Notes: a model not told the origin generated them from the sequence alone. 64,000 nt of DNA from Penicillus capitatus (GCA_965649825.1 OZ287710.1:310001-374000), one strand, 5' to 3'; counted from the first letter of the stretch, positions 1 to 56,889 are shown. Program-made: numbers and translations.

Positions 1-693
1 AGTAGGATGCCACGGATGGAATGTCGACATCCATCGACATCTATTCAAAATGCCTCTCTCCGTTCCATTCACCCCTTTCGCCACTCCTGTACTTCCGGAA
101 GAGAACATCGTGTAACAATGGTCACAGTCTCCGACAGCGTCCGCTACGCAGATGTCTTTCATGGACGCATCAGTTGCCGTCTTGCTAAGGGCACTGGGCA
201 AAGTATCCACCATCAGGACAGAAAGATCCACTGATGCTTTCTCAAGTTCCTTGACATGGATGGTATCGCTGATCACTAGGGACACGTGCGCCTCGGCGAT
301 GATGCGCTGCATTTCTTGAACAGACCATCCTGGATTCATCGGCACGAATATCCCACTACAAAGAGATAGCGTGAGATGCACAGCAGTCGTGCATCAAGGG
401 TTACCCGATCTTCATCACGGCTAAAGTGGACACGATATAAGAAACAGATGCGGGAAGCAGAATACCAACACACTTCATCGGCCCTACCTCATCACCTCTC
501 CTCTGCAATTCTTGTGCCAAAATCACGACCTGTTGACGCCATCGCCCTCGCTCGGGCATTCTCTCTAAAACCGTACCCGGGATAGAACAGTGGTGGCAGG
601 GTATTCATGAAAGGAGCATGGGTGTTCGCCAGCAGGGCATTCGAAGATCGACCATCGTCGGTCGCCCGTCCAGATGGAATTGAAGAGACGCAT
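1..693 (-). CDS. Adenylation-domain protein, AAE19/AASDH (ACSF4)-like; 5' part, runs off the left edge
   Basis: Spliced minus-strand translation (2 introns): MRLFNSIW...VSTLAVMKIGGIFVPMNPGW...YTMFSSGSTGVAKGVNGTERGILNRCRWM. The ANL P-loop (SSGSTGxxKG) plus LNRxxWM is typical of NRPS-like AASDH/AAE19. Missed by the ORF track. Confidence 0.75.
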
Positions 694-1078
694 GTTCGTG
701 GCGTCATCCGTATCATCTCCGCTTTATTCCGTCACGATGTTGGGTCAGTTCAACGCGAAACTTCGAACGGCGTTCATTCATGAACCTATCGTGATGTGGA
801 GCTGTGCCATCTCTTTTGCAGGTCACATCCGAGCGCACGCGCCTCTCACTCTCGCGTTTCTATTCCAGGGCTGGTCATTGCCGTCGCCGCACCGTATCTT
901 AAAGAATCTATGCAAGAAAAGAGACCCGTCCGCGTCATTCCTGCTCGAGAAGTGCGTTTCATCCCAACCCTATTCGATCCGGTCACTGAGACTGTGAGGC
1001 ATCTAGATGATTTCTAAACTAAAGGAAAGGAACTAAAATGGAGATCTTTAAGATAGCATCTCTTCCCCATCTTTCCAT

Positions 1079-1957
1079 CTATTCTTCAAAATCTCCGATC
1101 GTTGCTTTGATCGATGCGATGTCCAAGTAGAAATCGACAGCCTCTTTTGCATCGGCCGGAAGACTCATTGTAATCCCTGAACATAATCTCCTCCGCGGCG
1201 TCATGCGTTCTTACAAAAAGAGTGACATACCGAGAGACATGATCTTCGAGTGGTTCATTTGTGTGACTTCCGGAACGATTTTGCCTTTCCAGGTCAGAAC
1301 AAAGCCATTCAGAGGGATCCTCACATCATGCCATTCTTTCGTCCTGGACGTTGGAAGCTGAGGAGAAGCGACGTGCGATGTGACGTACCGGCAGGAGAAG
1401 AAGGATTGCCAGATGTCTTCGGATTCGCCACCCGTCACGAAATTGTAGACGCGGATGTTTGCCAAGAAAGGCATCGGTGTCCCGCGAATCCTCATGACCA
1501 GTTGACTAAACTCGGATAGATCCAGAAATTCTCCACTGTTCTAAAACGGCTTATCTCACACAAAAGGTCACACTTTGGAATGCGTAGACATGTGATCGGA
1601 TGCCACAGAATCCGCTGCGTTTGATCTTGGAGGCCTCGCGAATTTCGGTTGAGCAACGACCGGCGAATGTCACAAATCCCTCCTGTCTCCCTCGATCACG
1701 CTTCGCTTATCTGTTCGAGCAACGGACACAGACCTGAGGGTTGTGCGTGAGGTTGGTGACGGAGGCTCCGCCAAAGGAGGCGTCACTATAGGCGCTCAGA
1801 GATTCGAAGTCTTGCACTTTGGTGAAATCATAGAGCAGTCTCTCCGACTGGAATCGCATAGGATCCTTGACTGACACACATTCTGTGCAGTGACGGCACA
1901 AGTGGACTCACAGTTCTGAACGATGTTCTGCACTTCGCGTAGGACGCGTCGCCACAT
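1079..1957 (-). CDS. NDUFAF1: Complex I assembly factor CIA30/NDUFAF1
   Basis: Exons give MWRRVLREVQNIVQNFKDPMRFQSERLLYDF...SDASFGGAS...FLANIRVYNFV...WHDVRIPLNGFVLTWKGKIV...GITMSLPADAKEAVDFYLDIASIKA*, i.e. CIA30 family motifs. Confidence 0.85.
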
Positions 1958-2011
1958 CGAAAACAGACGTCACATCACGCACTATCTTTGATAAGTTTGC
2001 TGCAAGAGCAC

Positions 2012-3505
2012 ATGGAGTCGGGCGTCGTGGGTCAGTCCATTGCGCGTCCGGCGTCGACGTATCTTAACGCTCCATTGCCGGAGATTCTTGACATCTTAAG
2101 AGGACGTGTGCCTTCTGGAGATAGAGCAAAGTTTGAGATGTTAGCTCGATTGGCCGAGGCATCAACCGAATTTGATTTCCTGGAGCTGAGACGTCGCATC
2201 AAATGGACTTTCCGTCTGTTCTCAGATGGAGCTATGGGACGCGAACACGTTGGCCGACTGGGAAGATCGCTGCCTTCCAAAAGCGACCTCATTCAGAGAG
2301 AGCTGCGATTTATAGCAGACTTCTTGACACTCATGCAGACAGCGCATTATCATTTGCTGTCCAAGGAGCTGTGGGATGTTGCATTGAGTGAGGATTTTGA
2401 ATTGACGATGCCGTTGAAAGTGAATCTAAATGTGATGGATTCCAAAATGCTGACACGATTTTGGGCAGAACGCCCGACACAAAGAGAAGCCCTTCCACAC
2501 GTAGCAGACCGCGTTCTCATTTTTTACAGAGGTGTGTCGGTCGGAACGAAAACGGATGTCTTTATCTCCGAGAAATTTGATCTGCTGGCGACATATCTCG
2601 TCACAGATCCGCTCACGTATATCTGGAATAAACTCAATGGGAAGCCGTCTGAGACAAAACCTGAAAAGAGTGAGGAAGAGAGTGAGGATGCAGAGAGGTC
2701 AGTCAAACGCGTTTCTCTGCGATCTCTGTTGCCGGATTGGAAATCCGTCGTCCGACAGTTTTTTTCAAAGTTGGAGATCTCGGAGCCGACATTCGACAGC
2801 GTCGTTGTGCTGTATCGCAAGGCAAAAGCGAGTCTGCAGCCCTCGACGCCAAATACAAAGGATAACTATTATCAAGCCAAGCGCAATATCGTCATCAAGA
2901 TGTTCGATAGCGTCCCTTCGGCAGATCTGGAAGTGATCTTTCCTGAGAAAGTGGTGGATATACGCAAGACGTCATGGATCTATATTCTGATCACGCTAGC
3001 GGTGGCCGTGATCTCTGTCGCCATCACCATCTGGCAGACAGACATCGAGATGGCCGTCATAGGCTCTGCTCTGATGCTGTTCTTCGGCAAAGCGTTCCAG
3101 AGCTATACATCGATGCAGAGAGAAAAGGCGGCTATGACAGCAAAGATCTCCAAGATGCTGTACGATAAGACACGGGATTCCCAAGATGGCGCTCTCTTTG
3201 CGTTGTTGGATGATATGGCGGATCAACATCTAAAGCGACTTTGCGTTGCATACACTCTGTTGCTGCTCGTTTCGCAGAAAACCGCCGAGATTGATGAACT
3301 CAATCTTCTCTGTGAGCAATTTTTCAAAGAGAACTTTGGCAAAGATGTCGATTTCTGCCTCCGGGAGAAGATCCCGCATTTGATTAGCTCTGGACTCATA
3401 ACGGAAGATCCTGAGGACAAAGAACGGCTGATCGCTGTAGATTTCGATGCCGCCATTGTACACCTCGACGTCCACAGATACCCAAACTCACGATCCTGCT
3501 CTTAG
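2012..3505 (+). CDS. DUF3754 family membrane protein
   Basis: Intronless ORF of about 497 aa with F(E/D)LTMPLKVNL, IVIKMFDSVPSADLEVIFPEK and two hydrophobic helices followed by YDKTRDSQDG. First ATG at 2012 (the track starts at a TTG). Confidence 0.75.
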   Translation: MESGVVGQSIARPASTYLNAPLPEILDILRGRVPSGDRAKFEMLARLAEASTEFDFLELRRRIKWTFRLFSDGAMGREHVGRLGRSLPSKSDLIQRELRFIADFLTLMQTAHYHLLSKELWDVALSEDFELTMPLKVNLNVMDSKMLTRFWAERPTQREALPHVADRVLIFYRGVSVGTKTDVFISEKFDLLATYLVTDPLTYIWNKLNGKPSETKPEKSEEESEDAERSVKRVSLRSLLPDWKSVVRQFFSKLEISEPTFDSVVVLYRKAKASLQPSTPNTKDNYYQAKRNIVIKMFDSVPSADLEVIFPEKVVDIRKTSWIYILITLAVAVISVAITIWQTDIEMAVIGSALMLFFGKAFQSYTSMQREKAAMTAKISKMLYDKTRDSQDGALFALLDDMADQHLKRLCVAYTLLLLVSQKTAEIDELNLLCEQFFKENFGKDVDFCLREKIPHLISSGLITEDPEDKERLIAVDFDAAIVHLDVHRYPNSRSCS

Positions 3506-4646
3506 GACATGCTCAAAGAGAAATGGACAACGCGTCACCAGAAATTGGACCACCTCAATGCCGATGCACCTCTGTGTGAGTCACCGACGGCATGGATGCT
3601 GGCAGCAGGTAAAGTACCACTGTTCTCTTCGGAATGGATAGACGTCGATGGATGCTGTCCAGGTACTGGAGCGGTGGGTGGTGTTGCCAACATCGGCGTT
3701 TCTGCTGCGAGAGTCGTCACATCATCCTTGACGACTGGGGTGAGTGCAGGAATTCATTGTACGTATCTCTCCCCTTTCCTGCTTTCCTGCTGACGGTGTG
3801 TGATGCTTAACAGCAATGAGCAATTTGAGGGAAAATGTGAGAGGTACTGACAGCACGCACACTTTCCAAGATTCTCACACTTTTCTGCCATTCTAGGACT
3901 ACTGTTCCGTAGCGCGCCTGCTACCGACAAGAAGACTCAATAAATATGTCACCTATGTTGGAATCAATAATTCATGCTCATCTGCTGTAGATGGGTCATG
4001 TATTTGCGTGTTGTTATTGACAAGGATCCATGTAAAATGGAGTTTGATGGGACAGAGTTTCCTCACACTTGTGTCTAAGAATAGATGTCATTATCGCACA
4101 CAACACACAGCATAGCGTTTCACTTGCAGAAATGAATTTGGTCGTGCCCGAATCCCAGACGATCCCATGAGGAAACCCACAAGAAAAACATTCTTTCTTT
4201 TCCAGAAACAAACAAGATATACACACAGGGTGAAACAGGTTGTCCATTCCGACAGGCGTGGCATGTTTGCAGTGTTCAGTGCGTCGCAGTCATGCATGTT
4301 CCATTATTGAAACAAAAACTATTTCAAAGGAAAAAGCAATGCATGACATCTTCTCTTGGTACCTGTCTTATGCAGCATCATGAAATTGTTATTAGTTCAA
4401 ATTTCAGATGTGTGAAAGAGTGATTGGGTAGACCTCCACCGACGTCAAGCAGAAATCCAAAATTGGAACCCATCCACAAAACATACAAGCAAACAAGAAC
4501 ATTGTATGGCCACCCACACGTTTACATATAGTACGCAATTGAGTAGGCGGGAGAGGAAAGGCATGTGGGCAGTCCGACCATCGCACCCCATTCGCCACGT
4601 CTCTCATCGACAGCATGGACTGCCTGCCTCTCCTCGCTATTTTTTA

Positions 4647-6733: not shown

Positions 6734-8486
6734 TCATGGCTGTCCATGTTGGGGCTGCATGTTTATGGCTTGCGAAAAACAGGAGGGATCTGGATGTAGC
6801 ATCCCTCCACGGAAGTTTTCATGTACCGTTTCGAGACCGGCACCACCCCACCCTCTGAATAGGTTTCCAGATTGCTGATGAAAGCCCATTGTCGTCGATC
6901 CTTGCCAACCCATACCGCCTCTGTTTGAGGCGGCGGCTCCTGTCATTTGGTGCTGTTGCATCGGAACGGTCCACGGCTGCATCTGATGCATGGCATAGGG
7001 ATTGTTCAGTGCCAACATGCCATTGAGATGGCCAACAGTATTTGGCAAAAATGGGAGACTGGGTACATTGTGCTGGTGTTGTTGCTGTTGCTGAGGATAG
7101 GGATTGCTGCTGCCGCCTCCAAGCATTCCTGTGCTTTGAAGAAAAGCTGCTAGCTGTTCTTGCGTAATGCTGCCTCCCATTGCGTTGCTCTGTTGCTGGA
7201 CGATGCCTGCATTCAGATCCGTACCGGCAGGAAGTTTCGGAAGACCACTACCACCACCGCCGAAAAGCTTAGAGAAGTCCATCATCATGCCACTGTCCGT
7301 CGTTGACGGCATCGTGGTTTTCCCATCTGACGAAACAAGTCCTTGTTGCTGTCGCTGCTTATTCGATTCAGCCGAGTGACGACGACCAAACCCCAATCCA
7401 GAGGGTCCCTTTGGAAGCAGATTCTCAAAGGAGCGACGCTCGGACTTGCCCTCGGTTCCATTGGCCTTTTGCAACAGATCTGCCAAGTGGGATCTGCCAT
7501 CTGTGTCTCCTCCTGCTCCAATCATAGGAGCTCTTCCAATGTTCTGATGCGATTTCACGGCTTGGGCCAACAGGCCATTGTACTGTTCAATCAGGGACCG
7601 GGTCAAAGTTCCAGACAAAGCAGCCGAAGTGCTGCCAGAGTCTTCAGACATTACTTTAATATTGTGAAGGTAAGCAGATATGATATCGACGTAGCTCAGA
7701 CGGGACTCGGACAACGCAGCCAGCAGGTCATTGTAGTCATCTGGCGAGAATCCCAACAATGTCTGCAGCAGGAGTGCTGGATTGCCCAGTGTGCTGTCTG
7801 AGAGTGTCGTAATCAAACGTGCCAGAAGAATATCTGTAATCTGAGTCAATTGATCAGGCATGTCGTCTTGTTGAACCGCCTCTGTTGTTGTAGAACCTAG
7901 ACACCATAAAAGAGTGATATTTCGCGAGAAAAGAGTGAGGATGAATGCACGTTGGCTGTCCACAGAACGACTGTGGCCACTTCCATCCTGCGACCTGCGA
8001 CTTCCGCCATCGCCCGATTTGCGCCCTTCACTGCGAACCGACTCTTCCGATGCGCGACCTAATATGTATAACCATCTATCTATCAACATTTCTCACACGT
8101 TTGTCCGCGTCCTACTTGAACTCTTGGAATTATTATTTTTCTTGCTCTCGCGTCTTCCAGTACCCTGTTCGTGTTCCCCGTTCGAGGATCGATGATGGGC
8201 ACCTCTATACGGCATCGGTTGCTCACTCAACGCCTAAAGAGTGAGAATGTGAGATATGAAAAGGTGCGAGAAACGGTATGATATGGTGCACCTGAAGGGC
8301 TGCATCCAGCTTAGCGGCTCCACTTCTGTTGCGATGAACGACTTTCAACGTTCTTGGTTGTGGTTCGATCGCGGCAGAAGGAGTCTCTTCGGTGGGAAGC
8401 TCTTTCTTCATCGTGGCGACCTCCGTCGTTTCCGAAGTGAGAGATTCAACGTCAACCTCAGCGCGATTTGTAACTGGCGACATCAT
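6734..8486 (-). CDS. Hypothetical protein: S/R-rich disordered N-terminus, short helical core, Q/G/M-rich C-terminus
   Basis: ORF 8223-8534 joins ORF 6734-8089 through two GT-AG introns (about 8227-8284 and 8065-8121). A further in-frame intron is likely at about 7900-7953. No family recognised. Confidence 0.6.
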
Positions 8487-8869
8487 GAGCAGCGAAGCAG
8501 ATGGCGGACCAACTTCACACGCAGACACACACACGTCAGAAAACGTTAGACACGCGCAACGCCGCTTAGCTCGCGCAAGAATACTGGCTTCGTGACTGGC
8601 CTAACAAGAAAGGTCGGAAGACGGACGCGTGTTCATTGTACAGGTACACAGGACGTGCAACGCGGAGACGTGTTATCTAAACAATCGCTACTCGAGTCGA
8701 ATCGCAACAGACCTGGCGTTGTTCGTTACCGACCTGGACGTCTTCAAGAGTCAACGATTCACAACGCACAACAACACGCACGAATGCAAGGCTAAGATCT
8801 CGCCAATGCGACTTCACTTTAAATGGGCACTTTTGAACGCAGGATGCAGCGGGGCTGTCACATCATCCA

Positions 8870-9397
8870 ATGCAGCGTGGGAATTTAGCTGATGTGCCAC
8901 GAACGGTGGATAGTAATGTCGTTGCCTGCAAAGTCTGTGGGCTGATAAAGAGTTTTCGACAAGTAGAATGATCGAGCGGAGCGAAAGTCAAACCGAAAGA
9001 GCTGTTTTAGTTTTGTGAACGCGGTTGTGAAAACTGTCCCTTCTTAGAAATGAGGGGAGACCGACAGGCGACAGAAGATGGAACCACAGAAGCCTTTAGC
9101 GGGTCAACCCTCCATCCCCCTTTCCATCCTCTTTCATGACTCAGCTGAACAGGATGGCGAGTGTCATGGATCCACTAACGGGCTGGGCACCGAAGTGGAT
9201 GCACATCAGTAGAATTCGACGTCTTCTCATACGGAGTCTGACATCGAGGGTGCCATGTAGATCATCTGCGGTCGGGGATCTACTGTCTGTGTGTGGATGA
9301 GGATCTGCCTTTGGAGATTAAAGAAATTCTCGAGAACAAGAACGTGAACTATCGCATCCGGGATGAGGGATTCTATCCTCCTGAGCCCACGAACTGA
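8870..9397 (+). CDS. SPT4: Transcription elongation factor SPT4
   Basis: Spliced (3 introns): MQRGNLADVPRTVDSNVVACKVCGLIKSFRQ|FCERGCENCPFLEMRGD...TTEAFSG|MASVMDPLTGWAPKWMHI|NHLRSGIYCLCVDEDLPLEIKEILENKNVNY. Has the CxxC...CxxC zinc motif and SVMDP/WxxKW. Absent from the ORF track. Confidence 0.92.
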
Positions 9398-9603
9398 GTC
9401 TTACTGCGACACATGTGCCATTTGGATGTGTTTGTGATAAAGTCTATAAGGGATGTGATAGATGACTGCATCAAATTCTCCGTCTTGCTTTGCGCATGAC
9501 TCAGGCAATTCCTCGCCGTCGCCTCGGCTGTGCGCCTCGCCCCGCGCTCGTCGTTCAGAAGATATGCCATTGGTCTTTTGGCGTTAAAAGGAGAGGGATA
9601 TCA

Positions 9604-12600
9604 ATGCGAAAGCGTGTCTTTTCGAATCAAATGTCGGTCGCTGTGTTGACAGTCATCCTACTCTCTTCAGTTCATCGAGCATGTGGAGAGTACTATGCCT
9701 ACGATGGACGCCGCAATAATCTTCAGCACCCTGAATGGGGGTTGGCTTCTTTTGTAAGGCTGCAAGAGGCGAAAGCATTTTGGCTTAAGGTCGGCGAATA
9801 CGCCATTCATTCGCAAGCAAGTGCGCACAATCGACTACAGCGACGGCGCCGACACGATGGCTGTGAGGATCAACGAACCAACCCCTTTCTCTCAGTGGAA
9901 ATTGCGAAACGTCGAGTGCGTTTTAGGGATCGACGCGACCGAGTCCACGGGAGATCACTATGAAACTGCAGCCTGTTGGCGGTCAGGCGCAACCTCTAAG
10001 CACCAGAAGACTGACAGATATGGTGACCTACTTGGGTAGGCAGCGTCGTCTTGCCCTACTCAGGATAGCGTTTCCTTCGGTGTAGGACAGTTCTTCGACC
10101 ATGAGTTTGATCTGCGGGCGAAGTCCACGGACGAATCTGTGCCGATTTCTGTGCCACGATGCGATCCCAAATGGGACAGAGAATGCAATGGCAACGCATT
10201 CATTCCTTTTCACAGGTATGCGCTCGACTGTCGTGTAGCAAAGAAGCAAGTGGCCTTGTGAAAGATCGCACTACGTGAAAGACGGCTCCGGGCTGCGACA
10301 ACAGATCAACGTGGTCACTGCCTATCTCGATGGCAGCGTCGTTTACGGCAGCTCAGAGGAGAGAGCCATGCAACTGAGGACGCACATACAGGTTCGACAA
10401 TGCATCTCACTCAAAGAGAGAGTGAGATAATGTCATTCCATAGGGAAGAATGGCAACATCTGGTGGACTATTGCCTGACAATGTCCTCGGCATGGAGATG
10501 GCTGGAACGGAATCGGAGGCCATACTTAAGGCGGCTGGGGACATTCGGGCAAATGTGCATCCACCGATGCTTGCACTGCATACGCTGTTTGTTCGCGAAC
10601 ACAACCGTATCGCTGCCGAACTCTACGCAGAGCATCCGATGTGGTCCGATGAACGCATCTTCCAAGAAGCACGCAAATTCAACGTGGCATACATGCAGTC
10701 GATCTGCTTCAATGAATACCTTCCGATGCTTGGCGTTGCTCTGGATCCGTATGAGGGATACCAGTCAGACGTGGATGCCTCCATCGATAATTTCTTTGCT
10801 GCGGTGGCATATCGTTATGGCCACAGTGAGATCACGGAGATTCTGTTCCGATCGGACGAGGAAGGAAGGGAGATCGCAGATGGACATCTCCTCCTGTCAC
10901 GCGCATTCTTTGCGCCAAAGGCGACGCTGAATAACGGCATCGAACCCATCTTGCGCGGTCTCTGCATGAAGATGCAGGCCGATGTGGACACAGTCTTTGC
11001 CTCTTCCATCATGCACTACCTATTTGGCACAGCAAAACAGGGAGGCGTCGATCTGATCGCCACCGATATTCAGCGAGGACGAGATCACGGCATTCCAGAC
11101 TACAATACAGCCAGAATCGTACTTCGTCTGTCAATGTCGAAAGCCATAACGCACAGGGTGCTGCTTAGGAACTCGGACTCCCAGAGATGTTTGATTTTGA
11201 CGAGATCACATCGGACCCTTTTACGAGGAGAGTGCTAAGGGAGCTCTATGGAGACGTAAATAACATCGATGCGTATATTGGTGGAATGGCGGAAGAGCAC
11301 GTTCAGCAGACGAATCTTGGCCCGCTGTTCTACGCCTCTCTAAAAGATCAGTATGGGAGAATTCGAGATGGCGACCGACTGTATTACGAGAACGCGGAGA
11401 ATGGACGCTTTACTCAAGCAGAGATAACGGAAATCAAAGCTACTGGACTGCGAGATATCATCCTAAGAAACACAGACATTCAGGTCTGGCATCACTCTCT
11501 GGTATTTGAGTAACAGAACGGTGCACTTGTAGTACTTGCCGGAGAACATCTACATGATTGAGAACCCGGACGTCTATTGGTCTACAGAAGTGTCCGTCGC
11601 CGAGGGTTCGCCTACGTCGACCTCGACAGACGAAGAGACAACGATCACGCTCGCCGTTCTCCACGAGCCCTTATCGTGAACGCGGTTCGCTTTGACGTGT
11701 CTGTTTCAGGAAGGCTATTCCTTGACGTACTGGCGGGTCGACAACGAAGTGCACTTTCGGTTAACGGCGTCGACAACGGGCTGGTTAGCACTTGGATTTG
11801 AGGGACCGGCTGGAGGCATGATCGACGCAGATATCATCATCTGCACCGGCAGCGAAGGACAGGTATGCCAACAGCTATGCTCCTCATAGCGACAGGTGGT
11901 TTTGGTACAGGGCGAAGTTCGTGACTCTTGGAGCACTTCATTTTCGGATCCGGGACAAGATGAGGCTTCTGGAGGCACAACTGACGTTACGCTGCATGCA
12001 TTCTCTGAGCATGATGGAATGACGGAAGTGCATATCTCGCGCCGTCTGGATACCGGAGACGCCTTCGATCGAGTGATCAACGAAGGTGAACCGACAGACA
12101 TTATCTTCGCATGGGGAGCCGATGATGTCGTCGCCTACCATGGCGTCGCCAATCGAGGAAAGAGCAGCATAACGGTAGGTCCGTCTCTTCAGAAGCCTGT
12201 AAGTACGTGCATGCACGCTAGGTAACTTCCACCTCTTCCACAGTGTCCGAGGGAGCAACCTCGTCACCAGACGGGACGGCATCAGTGGGCGGCTCTGTCA
12301 ACCTTGCAGATGGCAGCTACGAATTGACATGGGCGCTGATGCCTGAATCGAGCGGATCTGCACGACATCTGCGCCAAAACGCCGAACAGCGTGTTCTGTT
12401 TACCATCAAGCTACAAGGCGAGGGATGGTTGGGTATGGGATTGGCGAGTCCTGCCGGTGGCATGACGGATGCCGATATCGTCGTGGCGTTCATGGATGCC
12501 GCTGGTAATTGCGATGTCGGCGACTACTGGTCCACCTCTTTCGTCCAACCGACAAAGGATACGGATCTCGGAGGAAGCGATGACATTCAGGATGTCTCGT

Positions 12601-15600
12601 GTACCCGTAACAACGGCGTCACAGAAATCACCTTTTCGAAACCGATCAGCAGCGACGATCCTAATGACAACAGGTTTTCTGCAGACCATCGGCTGGCCGA
12701 GGTGACAAGTGTGCCTTTCAGTTTCCACCTTGACGGATCTACCGATATCATCTATGCATTCAACCTGGAGTCGGATACATTGGCGTATCATGCCGGAAAC
12801 AGAGGATCAGCAGTGCTGGAGACATCTGCCGAAGCGGAAACAGGTGGCACGACCGGCGGTAAGTATCCCTGCACCGCGACGCGGAAACGGGGATCTTGAC
12901 TGGCTGTTTTTGTCAGTGACGGAGAGCGGTGATCTCGTATTCGCCGAGTCCACCCTTGGCCCCTTTACTTTACTTTGGGCCTTAGCTGGCGACGAACTGA
13001 CGGTCAAGATACAAACGCAAGAGGACGTGTGGGTGGGTATCGGTCTCGAGCCCGAAGACGGAGGAATGGTCAATGCAGACATGTACGTCGGGCACAACGA
13101 CGGGGACATGAAGATCGATGACTGCTGGTCCTCAGGTGCGAGCGCGCTTTTGCAACCCATGCGTCACCATCGCACTCCTTTCTCTCTGCAGGTTACGGAC
13201 AGCCTGCTGTCGATTCCGCAAACGGAGGGGCCAATTCGTTCATCGACAGTGGAGCGGCCGTCCAAGATGGCGTCTACGAGTATTGGTTTCGACGAAAGCT
13301 GGATACAGGTGATTCCAAAGACAAGATCATCAGGGACGAGACCATCGATTTGGTTTACGCTTGGGGTGCCTCTTCGACACTTTCCTATCACGGACCCTCT
13401 CAGCGAGCACAGGCCAAAATCAATTTCTTCAGCTCGGATGGCGTCGCGAGCGTTGTCGATCTGAGTCGGACAATGATCCGATCGCACGGTGGAATCATGG
13501 TGGCGTCGTGGGCAGTACTGGGTCTGATCGGATGCGGTATTGCGCGTTTTGGACGTGGATGGACGTATTGGCTCAAAGCACATCGGCTACTGCAAGTACA
13601 GCACCTCCTCTGACACAAGCGTCCAACGATGCCTGTCGTGGCCATCCATTCAGATAGCGACGACAGTCGTGGCACTCATAGGAGAAGTCATCGGCTTCTC
13701 GTACACAAAAGGAAGTTTCCGGACGGCTCACAGCATCACGGCATTGTGTGTTGTCTTTGTGACATTTCCACAAGTGTCATTGGGAGCGGCAGCCATGAAG
13801 AAAACGGGAAGCGTTCACTACAGCAAACTGCACAAAGGAACGGGCTACTTCCTCATTGGCCTGTCTATGTGGCAGGTGAAAAGACAACGATGCTGAAGCA
13901 CACATGTCCTCGCTCGCCTGAAGTCTGAGTTTGTGTGATAGTAGATATGGACAGGACTGATGACATTGCAGATCGGCTCGCAATTGAAGAGGTTGTTCGT
14001 GGCGTGGACTGCTGCCTGGTTTCTGGCGTTTCATTTCTCAACAATGAAAGCGACAACGCGAGAGACAGAGTCACTCTTTAAACACGCCACAATGCAGAAC
14101 GGCGAAAAAGATTCGAAATCAAAAGGACCTTCCGCTATAGGAAGTACGTTGGACTTGATCGCTCTGCTCGGCTTTCTGGAAGAGGACACGTGCAGATGAC
14201 AAGGAACTATCACAGAAGAAAAAATCGATGATCGCCAGAAAGTCTTCAGTGGTAGGCGATCGAGACTTGGCGGTAAGATGCATTCATCGACATTGCTGCA
14301 GGCGCATCTTGCATTGTCTTCTCGTGCTTCCGAGACGATCGACTTGCTCATCGGGGGATCATCATCAGATGGCTCAGATACCGATAGCAATGCCTCAAGG
14401 TTGGCATTCCTATTCAAAAAGGATTGAAAAAGATGCGCATCGATAGCATGGGTGCCACTGCCTGGAGCGAATCTGTCGCGGGTGGTCGACTGGAAGACAG
14501 TGCTGTTGTTTCCTCCGATGATTTCTTCGCGGTCCACCACCAACCCGCATTTCTATGGAACACAATCTCGATGTCCATTCTGTGATTGCAGGCTATTCAG
14601 CGAGGCAGTCTATGGACCATTATCAATGACGTCGTCTACGATCTCACCGACTATATTCAAGAGCACCCTGGAGGCGTTAAGGTTATGGAAGATATCGTCG
14701 GTGAGATCGACTTCTCGATCGATCTCTGGATCTCGATTTCTCAACTCTGCTCAGGAGTGGACGGTACAGATGCTTTCCTCGAGTCACATGCCGACGATCG
14801 TACAGTCATGAAAGTCCTGGCGAGTCTAGCAGTAGGAGAGCTTCACGACGAAACTGGCATCGTTCACGAGCTCAACCAGGTAACTAACACAGCTGCCTCG
14901 ACAGAGACCATCCTCATGATCATCACATTTTTCCTCAGAGACGAGGATCCATCATTGCCGGTGACTTCAAAAGAGATCTGGCTCAATTTGAAGACCACGG
15001 TAGCAGCAAAGGGGAAACATCGAAGCATCCAACGACGTGTTCACGTTGTAGGTGATGACGAGGTGTCTCCTCCCCCGTCTTCTACCCATCAGCTCGAATC
15101 GGCTGAAATAGAAGTGTGTCTCCTCGCACTTGCCGCAGTCTCTTGAGATCTGTACCATGTGTATGGACAGCAGCAGAATACCGTTCAGCTGGGTCTGGAT
15201 CGAAAAGAATGGCGCAGCTTTGTCATCGAGAACATCGATGAGTTGAGCCACGACGTTCTTTTTTTCAGAATACACATCTCAGGTAATTGCATCCCGGGTA
15301 CTCTTGGAGAGAAGATCTCGCTGCAGGTGATGAGCCGATCGATTTTCCCATAACGTCTCACTTGATGGTACGCGGAGTCGATCCCGCTTCAGAAAAGGCC
15401 ATCGTTCGAAGCTTCACGCCTCTCATTCCAGATCAAACCGAGTATCCCAACAAGCTGCATCTTCTGGTGAAGTGCTATGAAGATGGACGCATGAGTCGGC
15501 ACATGCGTTCGAAGAAAGCCGGCGATTCTTTGGAAATGAAGGGACCCACATGTGGTCTCAAGGTGCAAAAGGGAACATGGCGGCGCATCTGTTTAATTGG

Positions 15601-16006
15601 AGGCGGCAGCGGCATCACTCCACTGTGGCAAGTCATCCATGGACTGTTACAGGATCCAGAAGACGCGACGCAGATCTCGCTCCTCTATCAAAACCGTTTC
15701 CAGGAGGATATCTTGCTGCGTGCCGAGCTCGATACCTTTGCTGCACAGTATTCATCGCGTTTCAAAGTCGTCTATATCCTTTCGAAGCCGCCCGATGACT
15801 GGGAGGGACTCTCTGGGCGTCTGGATGCTGCCATTCTGTCGTCGCACTTACCTCGACCCGACATCCCGGGTTCTTTCATCATGATCTGCGGTCCACCCGG
15901 GCTGAACACCAGTCTCGCCGGACGCATGGATTATGAGACGGGCAAAAGGACGGAGGGTATTCTCCAACAGCTCGGATACACAAACGATCGGATCCATGTC
16001 TTCTAA
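9604..16006 (+). CDS. Multidomain redox protein: signal peptide - heme peroxidase (peroxidase-cyclooxygenase superfamily) - 3x DOMON - cytochrome b561 - cytochrome b5 - NADH:cytochrome b5 reductase (FAD/NAD-binding); about 1700 aa, about two dozen introns
   Basis: Peroxidase: YDGRRNNLQHPEWG, RPSPREIT, GQFFDHEFDL, QQINVVTAYLDGSVVYG, GDIRANVH, REHNRIA, AYRYGHS, DIQRGRDHGIPDYN. DOMONs: GWLALG..GGMIDAD..AYHG; GWLGMG..GGMTDAD..AYHAG; VWVGIG..GGMVNAD..SYHG. b561 histidines: RSHGG, KAHRL, TAHSI, KLHKG. b5: WTIINDVVYDLTDYIQEHPGG. Reductase: RSFTP, LLVKCYEDGRMS, GGGSGITP, CGPPG. Canonical GT-AG introns keep one frame across all domain junctions. Confidence 0.88.
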
Positions 16007-16060
16007 AACGCGTTTCTGAAAGTCGCCATCTAGATGTCTATCGTCGCTGTTGGGGCATCG

Positions 16061-18357
16061 CTATGGGCTTCGTTTTGCTATGCGTTGTTTCTTTTCCATG
16101 CGTTTCTTAGATTCTTCCCATGCAGAACTGTACTTAACGATAATCCTCAGAGGCACGCCTGTTTGGAAGAGAGTGTTCGGGGGGCAGTCTGGAGTGCATA
16201 TGCGAACCTTGGAAATCGAATCCTTCGCGCAATGCATTGACAAATGTCTTCTTGTCGACATTTGTCAGCGGTGTCCGACCAGAAACGCGGAGACAGAATG
16301 TTGGTGGTCGAGTCTTTGTCTGTGAAAAGAATTTGATCCGATTTATCACGGCGCTCGAAACACTGGCCAGTCTCCTTGCGGCAGCCACCTCGGCAAGCCA
16401 ATCATTCAGTACAGATGTCTTGAGCCTGGGCAGCAACAGAGAGAAGAAAAATCTGCCAGCAACGTGTGCCGGGGATCCCACTTTGTGTTCCACTTATCGG
16501 CCTTGTTGATGATTTCGGGGACAAGCCGCTTGATCCCATATCCCGTAAGGGCAGAGATTGGAATGCAAACGACATTGTCCACTTCATGGAATCGATTTGA
16601 AATCTGAGGATCGAACAGACAATGCATGGCAAAGTCTCGTCCACTTTTGATATTTGAGCTCTCTTACGTGTTGCACGACCTCTTTTTCCACGAGTCGTTG
16701 CTTGGCTGCATCAATGGTGTCCATTTTGTTGAGGACAAGGATCAAGACTCGCTTCTCGTCGAGAACAGCTGAGGCTAACTGCAGCTCTCGGCGAAAGAGT
16801 GTCTTGAACATCCGACCGATTGCTTGGTGGGATCTCCACGAATCGTGTGGCTTACCGTATCGTGTTGCTGAGCGTGGGACACATCGAGCATCACCACTGC
16901 GATGTGGGTGAAATTCAGAACCTTCTTCGCAGCGTAATAGGATTCCTTTGCAAGCTCTCCATCTGCATCGTTGAACTTTTCGTACGAGAAGAATTTCATC
17001 CATCCTGCTCAGCAAACACACCAGAAGCACATAACCGAATCAGCGCTGCATCAGCAACAGGGAACCAACCGGCAGTGTCGATCAGCTTGATTTTTCTTCC
17101 ATGCAAAAGCATGACTTCTGAAACTGGATCGCGTGTGAGACCAATCTCGGGACCTATCACGAACAGACTCCTGTCTTGTAAGGACACGCTATGAAAACTG
17201 ACTGACCACAAAGAGAACGCTCGTACTGCACCAAGTAGTTCATGAGTGTCGATTTACCCTGTCACGAGTCAACATGCAAACTGCTAAGAAACGTGTTGGC
17301 TTAGGACATACCACATTGGGCAAACCCATGATCGCGACTTTGATGATGTCGTCTGAGGCTTCTGGCTTGTTTGTTGTTTCTGTTGTGCCGGGTTCCTCTT
17401 TTTCGTTGCGATTGTCCCCTTGGTCGACAGAACTGTCTGCAGTGGACGCTTCGATAGAGGGGTCCGGCTGAGGGATGAACGGAATGAGAGCCTCGCACAG
17501 GTCGATCATTCCATCTCCAGTCTCTGCCGAAATGGCTACCGGTGAACCCAGTCCCAGTCGATAGGCATCCATCAGATGATCTCGAATCTCTACATCAATA
17601 ATGTGATCCAACACGATGTTCCATGAGTGCCCACCATCCATGGATTTGCTGCTGTTGGTCGCCATCGCTTCGCACTTGTTGGCAACGAGAAGGATTTTGG
17701 ACGAGTCTCGAAAGAGATCACGAATCCAGATGGCCACGTCTTCGTCCGCCACCGTGGGCTGCTCTCTGATGCACCGCTCTGCTGCAACACTTCGTCCGCA
17801 CGCACATGACAGGCGTAACCTTCCGTCGATCATGAAGAGAGTCAGATCCACTCGCTGCATCAGCTTCTGCGTGATTTTGGTCGCGCGTGCCTAGCTTCAC
17901 AACAGTGTCCTGTCGCATTCGATAACGCTCTCCTTGACGGGACTTGTATGCTCTTTGAAGTGGGAGAGGGCTCGAGACCCGATGTGTCCACCACTGTAAA
18001 GAACAGTTCTCCCAGTTGTGCAATCCCACATCGATAGTCTCGTGTCACGTGACTCTCAGGCGTGTTCCGCACCTGAGAATCGCACAGCGACTAACAGAAG
18101 TCCCTACAGAGATCTGATCACAACACCATTGCATCTCGACGATGAATGAGGCGATTGAACAGAGCAGATTTCCCGACATTGGGACGCCCCACCAGAGCAA
18201 CCTATGTCGCGATCACTTCTCGAATAAACAGGTCGAGAGGAGAGGACACAATAGGGAGTCCATTTTCAAGGGATGCAACGGGTCCAGGTTTAAAACTAGA
18301 GAACCATCGCCGGAAGGGCGATAGGATTCCAACAGGACCCAGCCGCGAGAGGAACAT
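16061..18357 (-). CDS. der: Double-GTPase Der/EngA, probably mitochondrial
   Basis: MFLSRLGPVGILSPFRRWFSSF presequence. GD1 has VALVGRPNVGKSALFNRL, TRDYR, VVDTSGL and LVANKCE. GD2 has VAIMGLPNV, GLTRD, LIDTAGW and LVLNKMD. The KH-like C-terminus reads QTKTRPPTF...NALREGFDFQG. Confidence 0.9.
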
Positions 18358-18396
18358 GAATGCCGTCCTGTCCTATCCTGTCTTGTCGTACAGACA

Positions 18397-20013
18397 ATGT
18401 TATGCCAGGTCCGTCCAGCAGCTGCCTCTCTACGTGTCTGGCGCGGCGGAGGATCTCTTGTCTCACTGCTATCGACGACGGCGACCAAGAAGGATCTGTT
18501 AAAGTACGAGACCCGATCAGTCACAGCTGCGATTCACGGCCCTGTCAGTTACGATGTGATCGTGGTCGGTTTGGGTCCTGTTGGCTGTGCAGCTGTCTAT
18601 CACCTGGCCAAAGCGCGGTGCAAAGTGCTCGTCCTCGTTGCAGTGGCACCCGATCGATGCCGGGATGCGTATCACAGGTTCTGGGAATCGAGAGGATGGG
18701 CAGTGTGATGCCTCCCCAACTTCCTTGCAATGCCCTGACATTCCATCACGCTCCTCACTACTACGCCCTGCTGCATAGATCTCTGACACTGTGGAAGAGG
18801 ATGGAGACTGATCTCGACAAGGTCATCTTTCCCGATCACTTGTTATTCTTTCAAGCACCGTCTCCCATTTCAGGAGCTGCTGTTGGAGACGGGAAGCCTC
18901 TACTGTGGCACGCGATACGATGCTATTTATGATGCTGTGGATTCTTTTCATCTGGATCACGAAGAGCTAAGGGGCATTGCCGTTCCGTTTCGTTATCCGC
19001 AGCTCTGGCTTCCGATGAAAGAGAACGTTCTTCTTGTGGATCTCGGAGCAGTCTTGCACAGCACGGTTGCGACAGCTGCCCTTTATAGTTTGGCACATGT
19101 GAGGCCTCTGCCGTGAGGCACAGTGCCATGGACTGGTTGCTGCGCATGAAGGAACACGGAGCCAAGTTTCGATTCCAGGAGACGGCGGTGAAGTGGAAGG
19201 CCACGGCATCGGATGTGACAGTTACCACAGACAAGTGTACCTATACGGCGAAGAAACTCATTCTGACGTGTGGCCGATCCATTGGGTCGCTCGTACCCGA
19301 ACTGAAAGTTCATTCCCACTTCTGTGGTGCTCTGTTGGATGGTTGCTGACAGAAAGCACAACGCGTATTGATCACAAGCATGGTCGTCTATCGACTGGAA
19401 AGGATCTACAAATCTGCGAGTGCCCCGCCCATTCCTGTCCTGCAATACGATGACGAGCACACTGATGACCGTCTACTTCTGTGGCCATCTCCGGATGAAT
19501 TGAGTACACGAGAAAGAGTAATGACGATAACTGTGTTCTTGCTCATGGATTGACTGTTAGATGTCTGCATGGTTACAGAAGCGACATTGGACGCAGCAAC
19601 ATCCGGACGTACAGCGCACCGACGGAAACGGATATCACCAAAAAGGAATGTGTCGATGCTGAGAAAAGTTTGCCAAGGGATCGTGTCAACGAAACCTGTC
19701 TCTGTCGAAGTAGATACCGCCAGTGTGATCAGAGACGGAGATTTCATTCTGGACTGGCATCCAAAAGCATCCCGAGTCAGAAACGTCTTGTCTAAATGGA
19801 TTCTGTATCAAAAACGTGCTGGTCCTTCTTCAGGTCCTTCTTGGTTTGCCCAGTGGGGACTTAAAGAATGCATGTGCTCCGGCACTGGGTGAAGTGCTGT
19901 CGCTCATGGCAAGAGAGAACGACAAAGACATCAAGCCTCTGCTGGAGCCATTTCGTCTGCAAAGGGCCTCCCTTCAGGAGAATCTGCTGGAATTTGGCAG
20001 TGAAAGAGAATGA
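18397..20013 (+). CDS. Sarcosine oxidase/pipecolate oxidase (MSOX/PIPOX)-like flavoprotein, divergent
   Basis: YDVIVVGLGPVGCAAVYHLAK Rossmann motif, LLHRSLTLWKRME, YTAKKLILTCG, DGDFILDWHP and APALGEVL. Several catalytic motifs are degenerate (see findings). Confidence 0.75.
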
Positions 20014-33575: not shown

Positions 33576-36500
33576 ATGGCCGGCAAAGAGACGTCGCACT
33601 CGGTTCCTGAGAGCTCCATGGTGGAGCTCACACCGCTCTTGGCGCACAAGAGAGTCCGTATCTCCGTGAATGGAATGACGTGCACGAGTTGTTCCAACTC
33701 CGTGGAGCGTTCCATTCGGTGAACACCTTTTCCTTTCCATCTCTACGTGCAAACTGCTTCGATGGATCTAGAAATCTCGATGGAGTGCAGCATGTCAGTG
33801 TCGCTCTCATTCAAGAAATGGCCGAAGTGCGATGATATCTATGTATTGGCTGTATATGAGAGCATCTGTGTGTTGGTGATGCTAGGTTGAATACAATGAA
33901 GAACTGTGCGCCGTTCCGTCAATCTTGAATGCTATCGAGGAAGCAGGATTCGATGCTGCTGTCAAGATAGAAAGACAGGAGAACAGTGGCATTCAGATCT
34001 GTCAGTTGAGAATTCATGGCATGGTCTGTTCTGCCTGCAGCAACGGCATCAAGAGCGAACTGGAAGATGTCCACGGCATCCATCGCGTCGACGTTGCACT
34101 CACTCTAGGCGAAGCCGAAGTCGAATACGACAGCAGGAGAATTACAACCGTAAACCGATCGATTATCCAATGAAGTCGACAAAAACTGAATGGATAGGAT
34201 CGCATTGTGGAGAGGATCGAGGAGATTGGATTCGAAGCAGAGATCATTGGATCTTTGAGTGCAGACAGAGCTATCTTCTCTATCTCCAACATGACCTGCT
34301 CATCCTGCACAGACAAAGTGGAAAAAGCTCTGTTCAGTAGGCCAGGTGTGCTGCATGCCGCTGTGAATCTTTTAACCAACGAAGCAGAAGTCGGAAGAAT
34401 CGCCAGAGACTGCGTGGACGACTCAACGGATCCTGTGTGTGCAGGTGGAGTTCAATCCTGATTTAGTCGGTCCCAGAGACATCGTTCAGCTGATCGAGTG
34501 CCTTGGTTATCCTTGTCGGTTGAAGGCAGAGAGTGATCGAAAATCGGCAACAGATAACGAAATCCGGCACTGGAGGCGTCTCTGTCTGCTCAGTTTGATC
34601 TTTACGCTTCCCGTCTTTGTCATGGCTATGGTCCTCCCGAAGATACCGCATGTCAAAGATTGGATCAAGACAGAGATTGGTGGATTTCCACTTGACGTTC
34701 TCTTCAAGTGGCTCCTCACGACTCCTGTGCAGTTTGTGATCGGATGGAACTTTCAAATTGGAGCATATCGGTATGTCCTGTACTCATTGCTCGGCAGGGA
34801 AGAGATGTATGATGCGTTCGTTGGTTGCAGGTCTTTGAGGCATGGATCTGCGAACATGGACGTACTGGTAGCGCTCGGAACCGATGCTTCCTACATATAT
34901 TCCGTCATTTCCGTTCTCACGCATCGAATTATGCATCATCACGCATCTGACTATAGCCCAACAGATTTCTTCGAAACATCGGCGATGTTAATCACATTCA
35001 TTCTGTTTGGCCGTTTTCTGGAAACGGCAGCCAAAGGAAAGACATCCGAGGCCATTACTAAGCTCATTCAACTTATGCCGGACACAGCCATTCTGGTTTC
35101 TCTTGGAAAAGAAAACGAAGTGGTGCATGAGGAGGAGATCGAGGGATCGCTGGTACAGAAAGGCGACTACTTGAAGGTCTACCCTGGCGGCCGCATTCCT
35201 GCAGACGGCGAAGTGGTGACCGGAAACTCCCACGTCAACGAAGCAATGATCACCGGGGAATCCACTCCCGTTGCCAAAACCCCTGGAGACTCAGTCATCG
35301 GCGGGACAGTGAACATGGGCGGATTGCTCATTGTACGTGCTCAGAGAGTGGGGTCGGAGACGGCCCTTTCCCAAATCGTACGCCTTGTGGAGAATGCTCA
35401 GTTGTCGAAGGCGCCCATTCAGTACATTGCCGATAGAATCTCTGCCGTTTTTGTACCTGTGGTGATGGCGTTGGCCTTTATGACGTGGCTCGCGTGGTAC
35501 CTGTCGGGTGTGACGAATCGTTATCCAGATGATTGGTTACCACAAGGGCACAACCATTTTCTGTTCTCGCTCCTGTTCGGCATCGCCGTTCTTGTCATTG
35601 CCTGTCCTTGTGCTCTGGGACTCGCCACGCCGACAGCTGTCATGGTGGGCACAGGAATTGGTGCACAGCTGGGAATCTTGATTAAAGGCAATTCGGCATT
35701 TCATTAAATAGCTGGTCGATAGATCGTGCATGAATGGTTTAGGTGGAGATGCTTTGGAGAAGGCGCATAAAGTTGATACGGTGCTGTTTGACAAAACGGG
35801 GACATTGACCATGGGGAAGCCGACGGTGGTCGCAGAAAGACTCTTTGGACAGAGCGTGCCTCTAGAACAGTTTTATCTTATGGTGGCCGCCGCCGAGCAA
35901 CAGACGGATCACCCTCTCTCATCTGCGCTCATGAACAAAGCCGCCCAAGTTGTCACTGGATCCGTTCCAGAAGCTGTGATAAAGATGAAGGACTGGGTTC
36001 CTTCACGCACAGATGAAGAGATGCGACCCGGACGAGGCGTCTTGTGCTGGATCGAAGCAGGGATACTGTCTGAGCTCCCCCATTATGCTGGCTCTTCCAC
36101 TGAAGGCCGTGTGAGAATTGCAGTCGGGAATCGGCAAATGATGGTCGAAGAAAACATCGCCATATCTGCAGAAGTGAGCCTGACACGAGCGCTTTGACGA
36201 ACGGCTTTGTACTAAATAATGTGTGATGCATGTAGATGGATTCTTATTGCCGACAGGAGCAGTCCGATGGACACACTTCTGTGATCGTTGCTCTGGACAC
36301 TGATGTGATAGGCGTCATCAGCGTCAGCGATCCACCTAAGCTCGAAGCCCGAGGTGTTGTCGCGGCACTCGAGCGACAGGGCATCGCCAGTTGCATCGTC
36401 ACAGGTAAGAGCCTCTCGAATTTCAAACAGCACAGAAGTACCGTCGGGGCTTTCTGCGTCAGGGGACAACTGGCGAACAGCGCATGCCATTGCATCGAAA

Positions 36501-37378: not shown

Positions 37379-38427
37379 ATGAAATTTGGCAAAGTGTTGC
37401 AAGACACTGCCGGGTACTTTCCCGAGAAGCGCTTCCTCAGTTATAAGAAACTGAAGAAGCTCTTGAAAACGATGGTCTCCGAGGGACCAAGTGAACTCCG
37501 TCCATTGCTCTTTGCGCTTTACTGAGTTGACGGCTATAATAGACAAAACGGAGAACGCGTCTGAAACCCCACAACCGAGATCTCACACAACAGTGTGACC
37601 CACTTCTATTCCGAGTCGGAGTTCACGGAAAGAGTGATTTAGGAAAGGAAGGGGCTACCTCCGCAAAAGGTTTCATTCCTGAGATGCCTCAATCAAGTAC
37701 GACGAGCACCGATCCACGGAAACGTTGCCTGTTAGAATGCCTTACTGTATGGCAGGAGCTCCATGCATTGAATTCCTATTTCATTGGTGAAGAAGAGAGT
37801 ATGGTCATTCGCATTCAGGCACTCGCATCTGCAATAAACGCCGCACAAGTGGAGGATAAGGCAAAGTACTCCGGATCTGTAGTTCAGTTCCACGGAGATC
37901 TCGTGGCGTTGTTTCATTGGGTGATCCTGAACTACGCTGCCGTCACCAAGATTCTCAAGAAGTGTGACAAGTTGCTGGAAGGGCAGCCCATTCGCCAGAC
38001 GTATCTGATGACGGTGGCGTTGCGGCAGCCGTTCTACTCGACAGAACAGATTGAGAAACTGGCGAAGCAGTGTGAACAGATGATCATCGATGTCAATCTC
38101 TCACCAGAAGCTTCTCGAAGACTCGAGAGGTCTCCATCCATCACTCTCTTTTCTGAGAATCTCCACACAGAGAAGGAAGGGAAAGAGCCCTGTCTCAATC
38201 GCATGCTCTATGCCATTCAGACATGGAGAGATCTGGGAGACAATGCCCATACGCCATCCACAGTGCTGCCCTATTCGAAGCCCCTTCCTGACAGCATGAA
38301 AATGCTGGAAAAATGCAAAGAGCATTCATCGGCGATAAAGAAGAGAGCTCATCTGGAGAAGAGGACTCACCTGGACGAGAACGCAGAGGTGCCCCCAATC
38401 AAAATAGCTAGAGTCTCAGATTCGTAG
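37379..38427 (+). CDS. Stand-alone SPX-domain protein (phosphate signalling, SPX1-like)
   Basis: MKFGKVL...FLSYKKLKKLLK, LNSYFIGEEESMVIR and LFHWVILNYAAVTKILKKCDK. No EXS/MFS/VTC/RING domain follows. Confidence 0.9.
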
Positions 38428-44069: not shown

Positions 44070-44111
44070 ATCTGTTCGAAAGTGAATGCGACAGATGAGA
44101 AGTTCGTCAAT

Positions 44112-56885: not shown

Positions 56886-56889
56886 TCTC

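Follow-up and report, generated by a model that had tools for sequence, protein, structure and literature searches.

The window analysed here is a stretch of 64,000 nucleotides (nt) from the bryopsidalean green alga Penicillus capitatus (GCA_965649825.1, OZ287710.1:310001-374000), and its plus strand carries, between positions 9604 and 16006, a gene whose product appears to be a single redox protein. As read from the DNA, this protein is led by a signal peptide and contains five transmembrane (TM) helices. A preliminary description of the locus had arranged seven modules along the chain, namely a heme peroxidase, three DOMON domains, a cytochrome b561, a cytochrome b5 and an NADH reductase. 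All seven are recovered between these coordinates on the plus strand, far above chance, by Pfam or, in the case of b561, by a family profile.

The gene model was built by hand from a three-frame reading of positions 9400-16300 and then corrected by homologues and orthologous contigs. The plus strand of this interval is a run of stop-free segments, which singly match the Pfam families An_peroxidase, DOMON, Cyt-b5, FAD_binding_6 and NAD_binding_1; the DOMON matches lie on separate segments, five pieces making up three domains. After splicing, the gene consists of 24 exons (9604-9740, 9790-9862, 9927-10035, 10086-10215, 10265-10391, 10444-11118, 11169-11483, 11533-11655, 11710-11862, 11911-12174, 12222-12858, 12917-13135, 13192-13595, 13654-13875, 13945-14143, 14196-14251, 14302-14399, 14447-14531, 14592-14700, 14755-14879, 14939-14999, 15052-15113, 15171-15282 and 15327-16006) and 23 GT-AG introns of 44-69 nt. 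The start codon is at 9604 and the stop codon at 16004-16006, giving a coding sequence of 5,175 nt and a protein of 1,724 amino acids. The start, the stop and the coding length of about 5.1 kb that had been anticipated were thus borne out, once introns 1 and 14 had been placed.

A first spliced model, of 1,710 amino acids, was rejected for two misplaced junctions. Intron 1 spans 9741-9789; the misplacement was exposed by a 1-nt indel relative to the orthologous contig, and the correction restores the canonical start of the peroxidase (...NNLQHPEWGSANTPFIR...YSDG) and raises its Pfam score from 448 to 463 bits. Intron 14 spans 13876-13944, and exon 15 is taken to start at 13945 because the motif IWTGL(L/M)TL between helices 4 and 5 is kept in Caulerpa and Bryopsis, which rules out the acceptor of the first model, 27 nt too far downstream. 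Introns 20 and 21 can also be read through in frame, neither version giving a stop. Their retention is disfavoured, as the spliced form is closer to the Caulerpa linker in both length and sequence.

Orthologous sequence was found on two contigs of the ENA assembly ERZ26696514 (L003 and L004). A profile search with the b561 segment returned mostly exon fragments, and one of these, P0132, led to both contigs. They align to window positions 8001-18500 with 85.4% nucleotide identity over 10.5 kb, with gene calls in a matching run. Projection of the 24 exons on either contig yields an intact open reading frame (ORF) of 5,181 nt with no internal stop, and all 23 GT/AG pairs are kept. Between the window and the orthologous contig, identity amounts to 89.1% in exons and 77.6% in introns, and the exon mismatches number 117, 88 and 360 at the first, second and third codon positions. 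In the exons, the only indels are two of +3 and a +1/-1 pair whose members, separated by 22 nt, cancel out within a loop of DOMON 2; among the intron indels, 21 of 28 are not multiples of three. On the two contigs (0.96 and 2.24 Mb) the entire locus is nearly the same, and either version has an identity of about 85% with the window; the pair may represent two haplotypes of a related alga or a duplication that arose there recently.

The ratio of nonsynonymous to synonymous substitution rates (Ka/Ks; Nei-Gojobori, window gene against orthologue) is 0.16 overall, with values of 0.14 for the peroxidase, 0.12, 0.27 and 0.15 for DOMONs 1-3, 0.03 for b561, 0.11 for b5 and 0.12 for the FAD/NAD part. 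The linkers between b561 and b5 and between b5 and the FAD domain reach 0.25 and 0.45, and in their exons mismatches again accumulate at third codon positions (7/7/20 in exons 16-18, 7/9/24 in exons 20-22). Whole-length relatives exist as well. Caulerpa lentillifera g480.t1 (61% identity) and Bryopsis BSKO_01713 (50%) are single gene models spanning 94% of the protein, the Logan contig L002 holds the whole architecture in one uninterrupted ORF of 4,059 nt, and in Platysulcus tardus it is found in transcriptome ORFs marked complete. Conserved splice sites, intact ORF, codon bias, linker Ka/Ks below 1 and whole-length relatives together support one gene and not several, in agreement with the original proposal. 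Antisense ORFs within the gene have no Pfam match, and no second copy of the gene was found within the window.

The predicted signal peptide (MRKRVFSNQMSVAVLTVILLSSVHRACG; 9604..9687, on the plus strand like all features of the gene) has its hydrophobic peak at residues 5-28, with a cleavage site assigned by eye according to the -3/-1 rule. Both orthologous contigs retain the hydrophobic core and the start codon at 9604, whereas they read ATT in place of the upstream in-frame ATG at 9496. The animal-type heme peroxidase domain follows (residues 30-534; 9691..11568) and matches PF03098 with 462.7 bits (cut-off 25; E 2e-138; Pfam on the spliced 1,724-residue protein) over profile positions 1-528 of 530. 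Its distal residues D111-H112 and R227, its proximal H319 and the Ca-site motif TAYLDGS align with the closest solved relatives, 8s6c (E 8e-113) and Dictyostelium DdPoxA 6erc (E 2e-86), stand-alone soluble peroxidases of the short bacterial/protist type that share the distal His and Arg, the proximal His and this motif. The peroxidase-homology domains of DUOX1, 6wxr (E 3e-53) and 7d3e (E 1e-49), match residues 28-525.

Two positions set the domain apart from 8s6c and 6erc. V230 (window 10555) occupies the position of the Glu heme ester link, with Val also in Caulerpa, Bryopsis and Cymbomonas, so that of the two heme ester links of mammalian peroxidases the Asp is retained (D111) and the Glu replaced. 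D400 (window 11065) stands where the solved relatives carry the Asn that partners the proximal His, as it does in Caulerpa, Bryopsis, Platysulcus and some others. The double ester link marks the mammalian subgroup and not the peroxidase-cyclooxygenase superfamily as a whole, of which the protein is a member.

Pfam finds three DOMON copies in the full protein, with 222.5 bits. DOMON 1 covers residues 554-705 (11626..12230, coordinates from a local hidden Markov model (HMM)), DOMON 2 residues 731-901 (12306..12818; E 8e-20 on a single exon) and DOMON 3 residues 918-1070 (12925..13439). Candidate heme ligands are M600 and H691, M783 and H892, and M965 and H1054, respectively; in every DOMON of 21 family members a Met and a His are invariant, as is the DOMON 2 pair in an alignment of 11 sequences. 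Their spacing of 89-109 residues can be compared, by distance along the chain, with the 84 residues between M90 and H174, the b-heme ligands proposed for the DOMON of HYP1 (PMC10784544). DOMON 2 is the least constrained domain and contains a poorly conserved loop. It is in this loop (12674-12696, exon 11), which has an AlphaFold2 pLDDT below 50, that the +1/-1 indel pair relative to both orthologous contigs shifts about seven codons. A search of the PDB with DOMON sequence gave nothing significant (best E 0.15). The AlphaFold2 model of DOMON 2 (pLDDT 78) matches the DOMON of dopamine beta-hydroxylase (DBH; 4zel) and the heme-binding cytochrome domains of cellobiose dehydrogenase (CDH; 4qi3/4qi7/4qi6).

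The cytochrome b561-type core (residues 1079-1234; 13464..14058) comprises helices TM-A (13488-13550, H1086), TM-B (13578-13707, H1118), TM-C (13723-13797, H1148), TM-D (13828-13971, H1182) and TM-E (13990-14052, without heme His). The five helices listed in the preliminary description, including LFVAWTAAWFLAFHF, are therefore all present. An alignment of 17 family segments displays these four His and one Arg as invariant. The profile of these segments matches Dcytb 5zle (E 4.5e-5) and Arabidopsis CYB561B 4o6y (E 1.2e-4), with the four His falling on His residues that we take to be the heme ligands of those structures, and 14 of the 17 segments individually match PF03188. Membership of the b561/CYBDOM group is thus supported indirectly, by the family profile. 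The layout agrees with that of a CYBDOM, with a predicted signal peptide, three DOMONs at residues 554-1070 and a TM core from residue 1079. Alignment of the b5-bearing members to Dcytb gave no clear pattern at the ascorbate-site residues.

A low-complexity linker of about 100 residues (1235-1336; 14059..14513), stop-free after splicing and predicted to lie in the cytosol, begins in the last part of exon 15, takes up exons 16 and 17 and extends through most of exon 18; it resembles the Caulerpa and Bryopsis linkers, and its splice sites are kept in both orthologous contigs. The cytochrome b5 domain behind it (residues 1337-1408; 14514..14843; PF00173, 54.8 bits) is matched by cytochrome b5 structures at E ~1e-8. 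Its putative heme ligands are H1367, within HPGG, and H1390, conserved in 20 and 18 of 21 family members. The chain ends with an NADH-cytochrome-b5-reductase-like module (residues 1468-1724, the last being F1724; 15189..16003), made up of FAD_binding_6 (PF00970, 57.8 bits; 15222-15550) with the motif R1526-S-F-T and NAD_binding_1 (PF00175, 85.5 bits; 15593-15907) with GGGSGITP and CGPP. The FAD motif, RSFTP, has Phe for the Tyr of RxY(T/S), likewise in Caulerpa and Bryopsis. The best solved relatives are the NADH-cytochrome b5 reductases 7rom and 2eix (E 2e-38) and the nitrate reductase FAD domain 5yly, and that the nearest of them are NADH enzymes suggests NADH rather than NADPH as donor. A homologue search with the C-terminal 659 residues returned two nitrate reductases alone; owing to a limit of the word index, it missed the known orthologues too.

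The cofactor ligands had been described as intact, and the orthologue has the same amino acid at each of the 23 ligand and motif positions compared, which makes a complement of seven hemes and one FAD plausible. As to topology, the odd number of helices after an external N-terminus would place the b5 and reductase in the cytosol, with the peroxidase and DOMONs outside or in a lumen. This N-out, C-in arrangement, put forward from the start, agrees mildly with the positive-inside rule: the predicted cytosolic loops hold 4, 4 and 3 Lys plus Arg residues, the external ones 2, 2 and 2. In this orientation, H1086 and H1148 lie at the outward ends of helices A and C, and H1118 and H1182 at the inward ends of helices B and D. 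The resulting pairing of first with third and second with fourth His is the same as that reported for HYP1 (PMC10784544).

To place the protein within a family, we classed 266 retrieved proteins by local domain HMMs. About 80 of them have the full order peroxidase-DOMON(n)-b561-b5-reductase, and about 20 have peroxidase-DOMON(n)-b561 without b5 and reductase. Named members come from Bryopsidales, Cymbomonas, Chlorokybus and Chlamydomonadales/Sphaeropleales (in the short form), many Chytridiomycota, Paraphysoderma and the stramenopile Platysulcus. Among the 266, only the proteins of the window, Caulerpa and Bryopsis combine three DOMONs with a complete C-terminal module; the number of DOMONs is two in Cymbomonas and one in the chytrids. 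The alga of the window is nearer to Caulerpa than to Bryopsis. The conserved core thus appears to be peroxidase, DOMON and b561, with b5 and reductase as a frequent add-on. This pattern argues that the electron wire serves the peroxidase and that b5 and reductase stand in for the ascorbate donor of ordinary CYBDOMs. Retention of the peroxidase-DOMON-b561 fusion in at least three eukaryotic groups likewise argues that these parts work jointly.

The database entries of the family are labelled "hypothetical protein" or "heme peroxidase", or are unnamed. No characterised protein with this layout was found, and uncharacterised entries do exist, as the preliminary description had guessed on both counts. 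Full-text literature searches, whose coverage is thin for subscription journals so that a brief earlier mention is possible, gave no description of the architecture. The modules and the electron-transfer logic are known ones; what is new is their conserved, self-contained combination.

The nearest characterised counterparts include the CYBDOM proteins (Arabidopsis HYP1 and CRR, animal SDR2/FRRS1). The present protein shares with them a signal peptide, an external b-heme DOMON with Met/His ligation, a b561 with four His on four consecutive helices (out of five TM helices here), a DOMON that leads straight into the first helix bearing a His, and a presumed flow of electrons from the cytosol to the outside. 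Unlike them, it carries not one but three DOMONs, its b561 is too divergent for PF03188, and a heme peroxidase at the N-terminus is a candidate acceptor. Its C-terminal b5 and FAD/NAD(H) module would probably take the place of ascorbate, the donor reported for characterised CYBDOM/b561 members (PMC10784544).

As in DUOX1/2, a single polypeptide would unite a peroxidase-family domain outside, a bis-heme domain in the membrane and a flavin/NAD(P)H dehydrogenase on the cytosolic side. However, the membrane domain is b561-type, DOMONs are inserted, and the dehydrogenase is FAD_binding_6/NAD_binding_1 with b5, not FAD_binding_8/NAD_binding_6. Ferric_reduct PF01794, FAD_binding_8, NAD_binding_6 and EF-hand were all absent from the full protein (Pfam, E <= 0.01). 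In addition, the peroxidase-homology domain of DUOX is catalytically degenerate, whereas the present peroxidase keeps distal His, proximal His and distal Arg. By its domain content, the protein is not a member of NOX/DUOX, although its layout resembles that of DUOX. The original claim of a DUOX-like layout made "from unrelated parts" holds for the membrane heme domain, which has a different fold, but not for the peroxidase, which is homologous to that of DUOX, as the match to 6wxr indicates. The FAD/NAD module is a distant relative of the NOX dehydrogenase within the FNR superfamily.

The cytosolic end recalls the C-terminal half of nitrate reductase and Ncb5or, in which b5 precedes an FAD/NADH module with the motifs HPGG, RxY/F-T, GxGxxP and CGPP. 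Here, in contrast, the module is tethered by the long linker to a membrane b561 and not to a molybdenum or CS domain, so its acceptor is presumably the inner b561 heme. The external end resembles CDH, which also joins a DOMON-fold b-heme domain through a flexible Ser/Thr-rich linker and passes single electrons to a separate catalytic metal centre. CDH differs in being soluble and secreted, drawing its electrons from sugar oxidation outside the cell and reducing LPMO, whereas here cytosolic NADH would supply electrons across the membrane and the candidate acceptor is the fused peroxidase. Ser/Thr-rich linkers join the DOMONs and are also found between the peroxidase and the DOMONs. They suggest mobile domains, and the DOMONs probably act as relays in the manner of the CDH cytochrome domain.

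Taken together, these features point to the following mechanism. Cytosolic NADH would reduce the FAD of the b5-reductase-like module, from which single electrons would pass to the b5 heme, to the inner and then the outer heme of b561, with one heme near each membrane face, and on to one or more DOMON hemes. The b5/b5-reductase pair would thereby replace cytosolic ascorbate, the usual CYBDOM donor. The electrons would end at the peroxidase heme, reducing Compound I or II generated by H2O2. The net result would be an NADH-driven reduction of extracellular peroxide or, equivalently, the recycling of Compound II, which would sustain peroxidase turnover. Each step and the terminal acceptor are what we infer by analogy, the chain up to the DOMONs mirroring the characterised relatives of its modules.

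Literature redox potentials of other proteins agree with this direction. Approximate values are -320 mV for NADH, 0 mV for b5, +20 to +190 mV for b561, +100 to +200 mV for DOMON/CDH cytochromes and +1 V for peroxidase Compound I/II, so the path would run downhill to Compound I/II. The ferric/ferrous couple of such peroxidases lies at approximately 0 to -280 mV, and reduction of the ferric to the ferrous peroxidase would thus be uphill by some hundreds of millivolts. Compared with peroxide reduction, production of H2O2 by the wire looks less likely.

Several points weigh against this mechanism. The gene model of the Penicillus protein was read from genomic DNA, and the b561 segment of the window itself has no Pfam b561 match, either as fragments or in the full protein. 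The step from a DOMON heme to the peroxidase is hypothetical, and electrons fed to the peroxidase would compete with its ordinary substrates, which makes the physiological benefit less obvious. The potentials above are approximate values for other proteins. A series of three DOMONs is not needed, since most family members have a single one. A few chytrid members apparently lack the distal His, at a site where the alignment is uncertain, which hints at a non-peroxidatic role in those organisms. On balance we favour NADH-driven reduction of external peroxide, or Compound II recycling, with a chance approaching even.

Two other functions are less likely. One is a DUOX-like generator of reactive oxygen species, in which the wire would render the peroxidase heme (or a DOMON heme) ferrous, O2 would bind, superoxide or H2O2 would be released outside, and the peroxidase would then halogenate or cross-link wall or wound-plug material. 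The layout parallel to DUOX and the homologous peroxidase domain favor such a function, the plant peroxidase-oxidase reaction offers a precedent, and the members seemingly without distal His would suit an O2-binding heme more than an H2O2-cleaving one. By the approximate literature potentials, however, the peroxidase ferric/ferrous couple lies far below the b561 and DOMON hemes, making the decisive step strongly uphill, and any effect of D400, in place of Asn beside the proximal His, would be to depress that couple even more. Nor are b561 or DOMON cytochromes known to possess a site that reacts with O2, and we regard this function as unlikely.

The other is an NADH-powered CYBDOM reductase for external acceptors, such as Fe(III)/Cu(II) chelates, monodehydroascorbate or copper enzymes, with the peroxidase working independently on H2O2 and fused only for co-localisation. 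The peroxidase indeed has a complete catalytic set of its own, and the DOMON fold matches the cytochrome domain of CDH, which donates electrons to a separate enzyme. The characterised CYBDOMs HYP1 and CRR act as ferric/cupric reductases across the membrane, and the edge of their DOMON heme is exposed to solvent (PMC10784544; PMC10784552). Yet about 100 of the retrieved proteins, belonging to several eukaryotic groups, have the peroxidase fused ahead of DOMON-b561, with or without b5 and reductase, a persistence that co-localisation alone hardly explains, and Pfam reveals no metal-binding or additional acceptor module in the full protein. An independent reductase is given a similarly low chance. 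Far less probable than either is that the single frame is an artefact of a decaying pseudogene or of two or more genes (for instance peroxidase-DOMON-b561 and a separate b5-reductase), since, for all that the model was read from genomic DNA, that family variants ending after b561 exist, that the linker exons are short and of low complexity and that introns 20 and 21 are also readable in frame, the inter-exon gaps of 44-69 nt leave no space for a promoter or terminator, the linker exons keep their third-position bias and low Ka/Ks, splice pairs are kept with exon indels in threes or compensated, and the same fusion is annotated in Caulerpa and Bryopsis, uninterrupted in L002 and complete in Platysulcus.

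The surroundings of the gene display several further features. About 220 nt upstream lies a homologue of the transcription elongation factor Spt4 (8888-9385, plus strand) with short introns. Caulerpa g480.t1 begins with an Spt4 domain (PF06093) fused to the peroxidase; as Spt4 is a separate gene in the window, g480.t1 has merged two genes, and the gene order is common to both algae. The Caulerpa and Bryopsis annotations of the peroxidase gene are wrong at the N-terminus, and the present model can correct them. In Bryopsis, a tblastn search with the window protein located a second, shorter copy directly upstream of BSKO_01713 (BSYQ01000001.1, ~234-4142), with a match to peroxidase residues 42-712 at 38% identity (E 9e-117) and further matches to DOMON/b561 and b5/reductase. 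The annotation there is a Peptidase_M16 gene ending at 2337, and no ORF exceeds 173 amino acids; this copy may be a tandem paralogue, spliced or decayed.

Just downstream of the peroxidase gene, the opposite strand carries a gene at ~16400-17900 with ORFs at 16584-17030 and 17240-17860, whose fragments from the window have no Pfam match; the matching calls on contig L003 (10893-13178, minus strand) combine KH_dom-like and MMR_HSR1, as in an EngA/Der-type GTPase. Further along the window, an ORF of 603 amino acids (51324-53135, plus strand) carries ANF_receptor, NCD3G and Ephrin_rec_like and resembles the ectodomain of a class-C G-protein-coupled receptor, which is unusual in a green alga. It is immediately followed by an ORF of 740 amino acids without Pfam match (53148-55370, plus strand). 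Other long ORFs match, by Pfam, DUF3754 (1988-3505), a P-type ATPase (E1-E2; 34439-35707), SPX (37684-38427), F-box/FBO_C (43131-44297, minus strand) and CRAL_TRIO (56773-57741). The window as a whole fits a gene-dense nuclear region with very short introns.

With regard to biological role, the distribution of the family argues against a function specific to siphonous algae, such as wound plugging, because chytrids and a heterotrophic stramenopile have it too, usually with one DOMON. For this alga itself wound plugging or adhesion is possible, but the members from chytrids and from a flagellate that lives heterotrophically suggest a broader role. We tentatively propose, at somewhat less than even probability, that the protein is the first to be recognised from a widespread class of "electron-wired" peroxidases, extracellular and so far unstudied, in which a self-contained, NOX-independent trans-membrane chain of up to seven hemes and FAD lets cytosolic NADH directly drive the redox state of an external heme peroxidase.

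To our knowledge, the physiological acceptors of CYBDOM and b561 proteins are largely unsettled. The present family hard-wires both ends, with b5/b5-reductase inside and a catalytically complete peroxidase outside, making the question of partners testable in one polypeptide. If correct, the proposal would answer what CYBDOM wires deliver electrons to, and whether b5/b5-reductase can feed b561 in place of ascorbate. It would add a third coupling of cytosolic reducing power to extracellular redox chemistry, beside NOX/DUOX and ascorbate-b561, and in its boldest form, if true, a second, independently evolved DUOX-type oxidase system. The protein would also represent a natural multi-heme wire that protein engineers could copy. 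Finally, the presence of the family in green algae, chytrids and a deep stramenopile sets an ancient origin against convergence by domain fusion or gene transfer.

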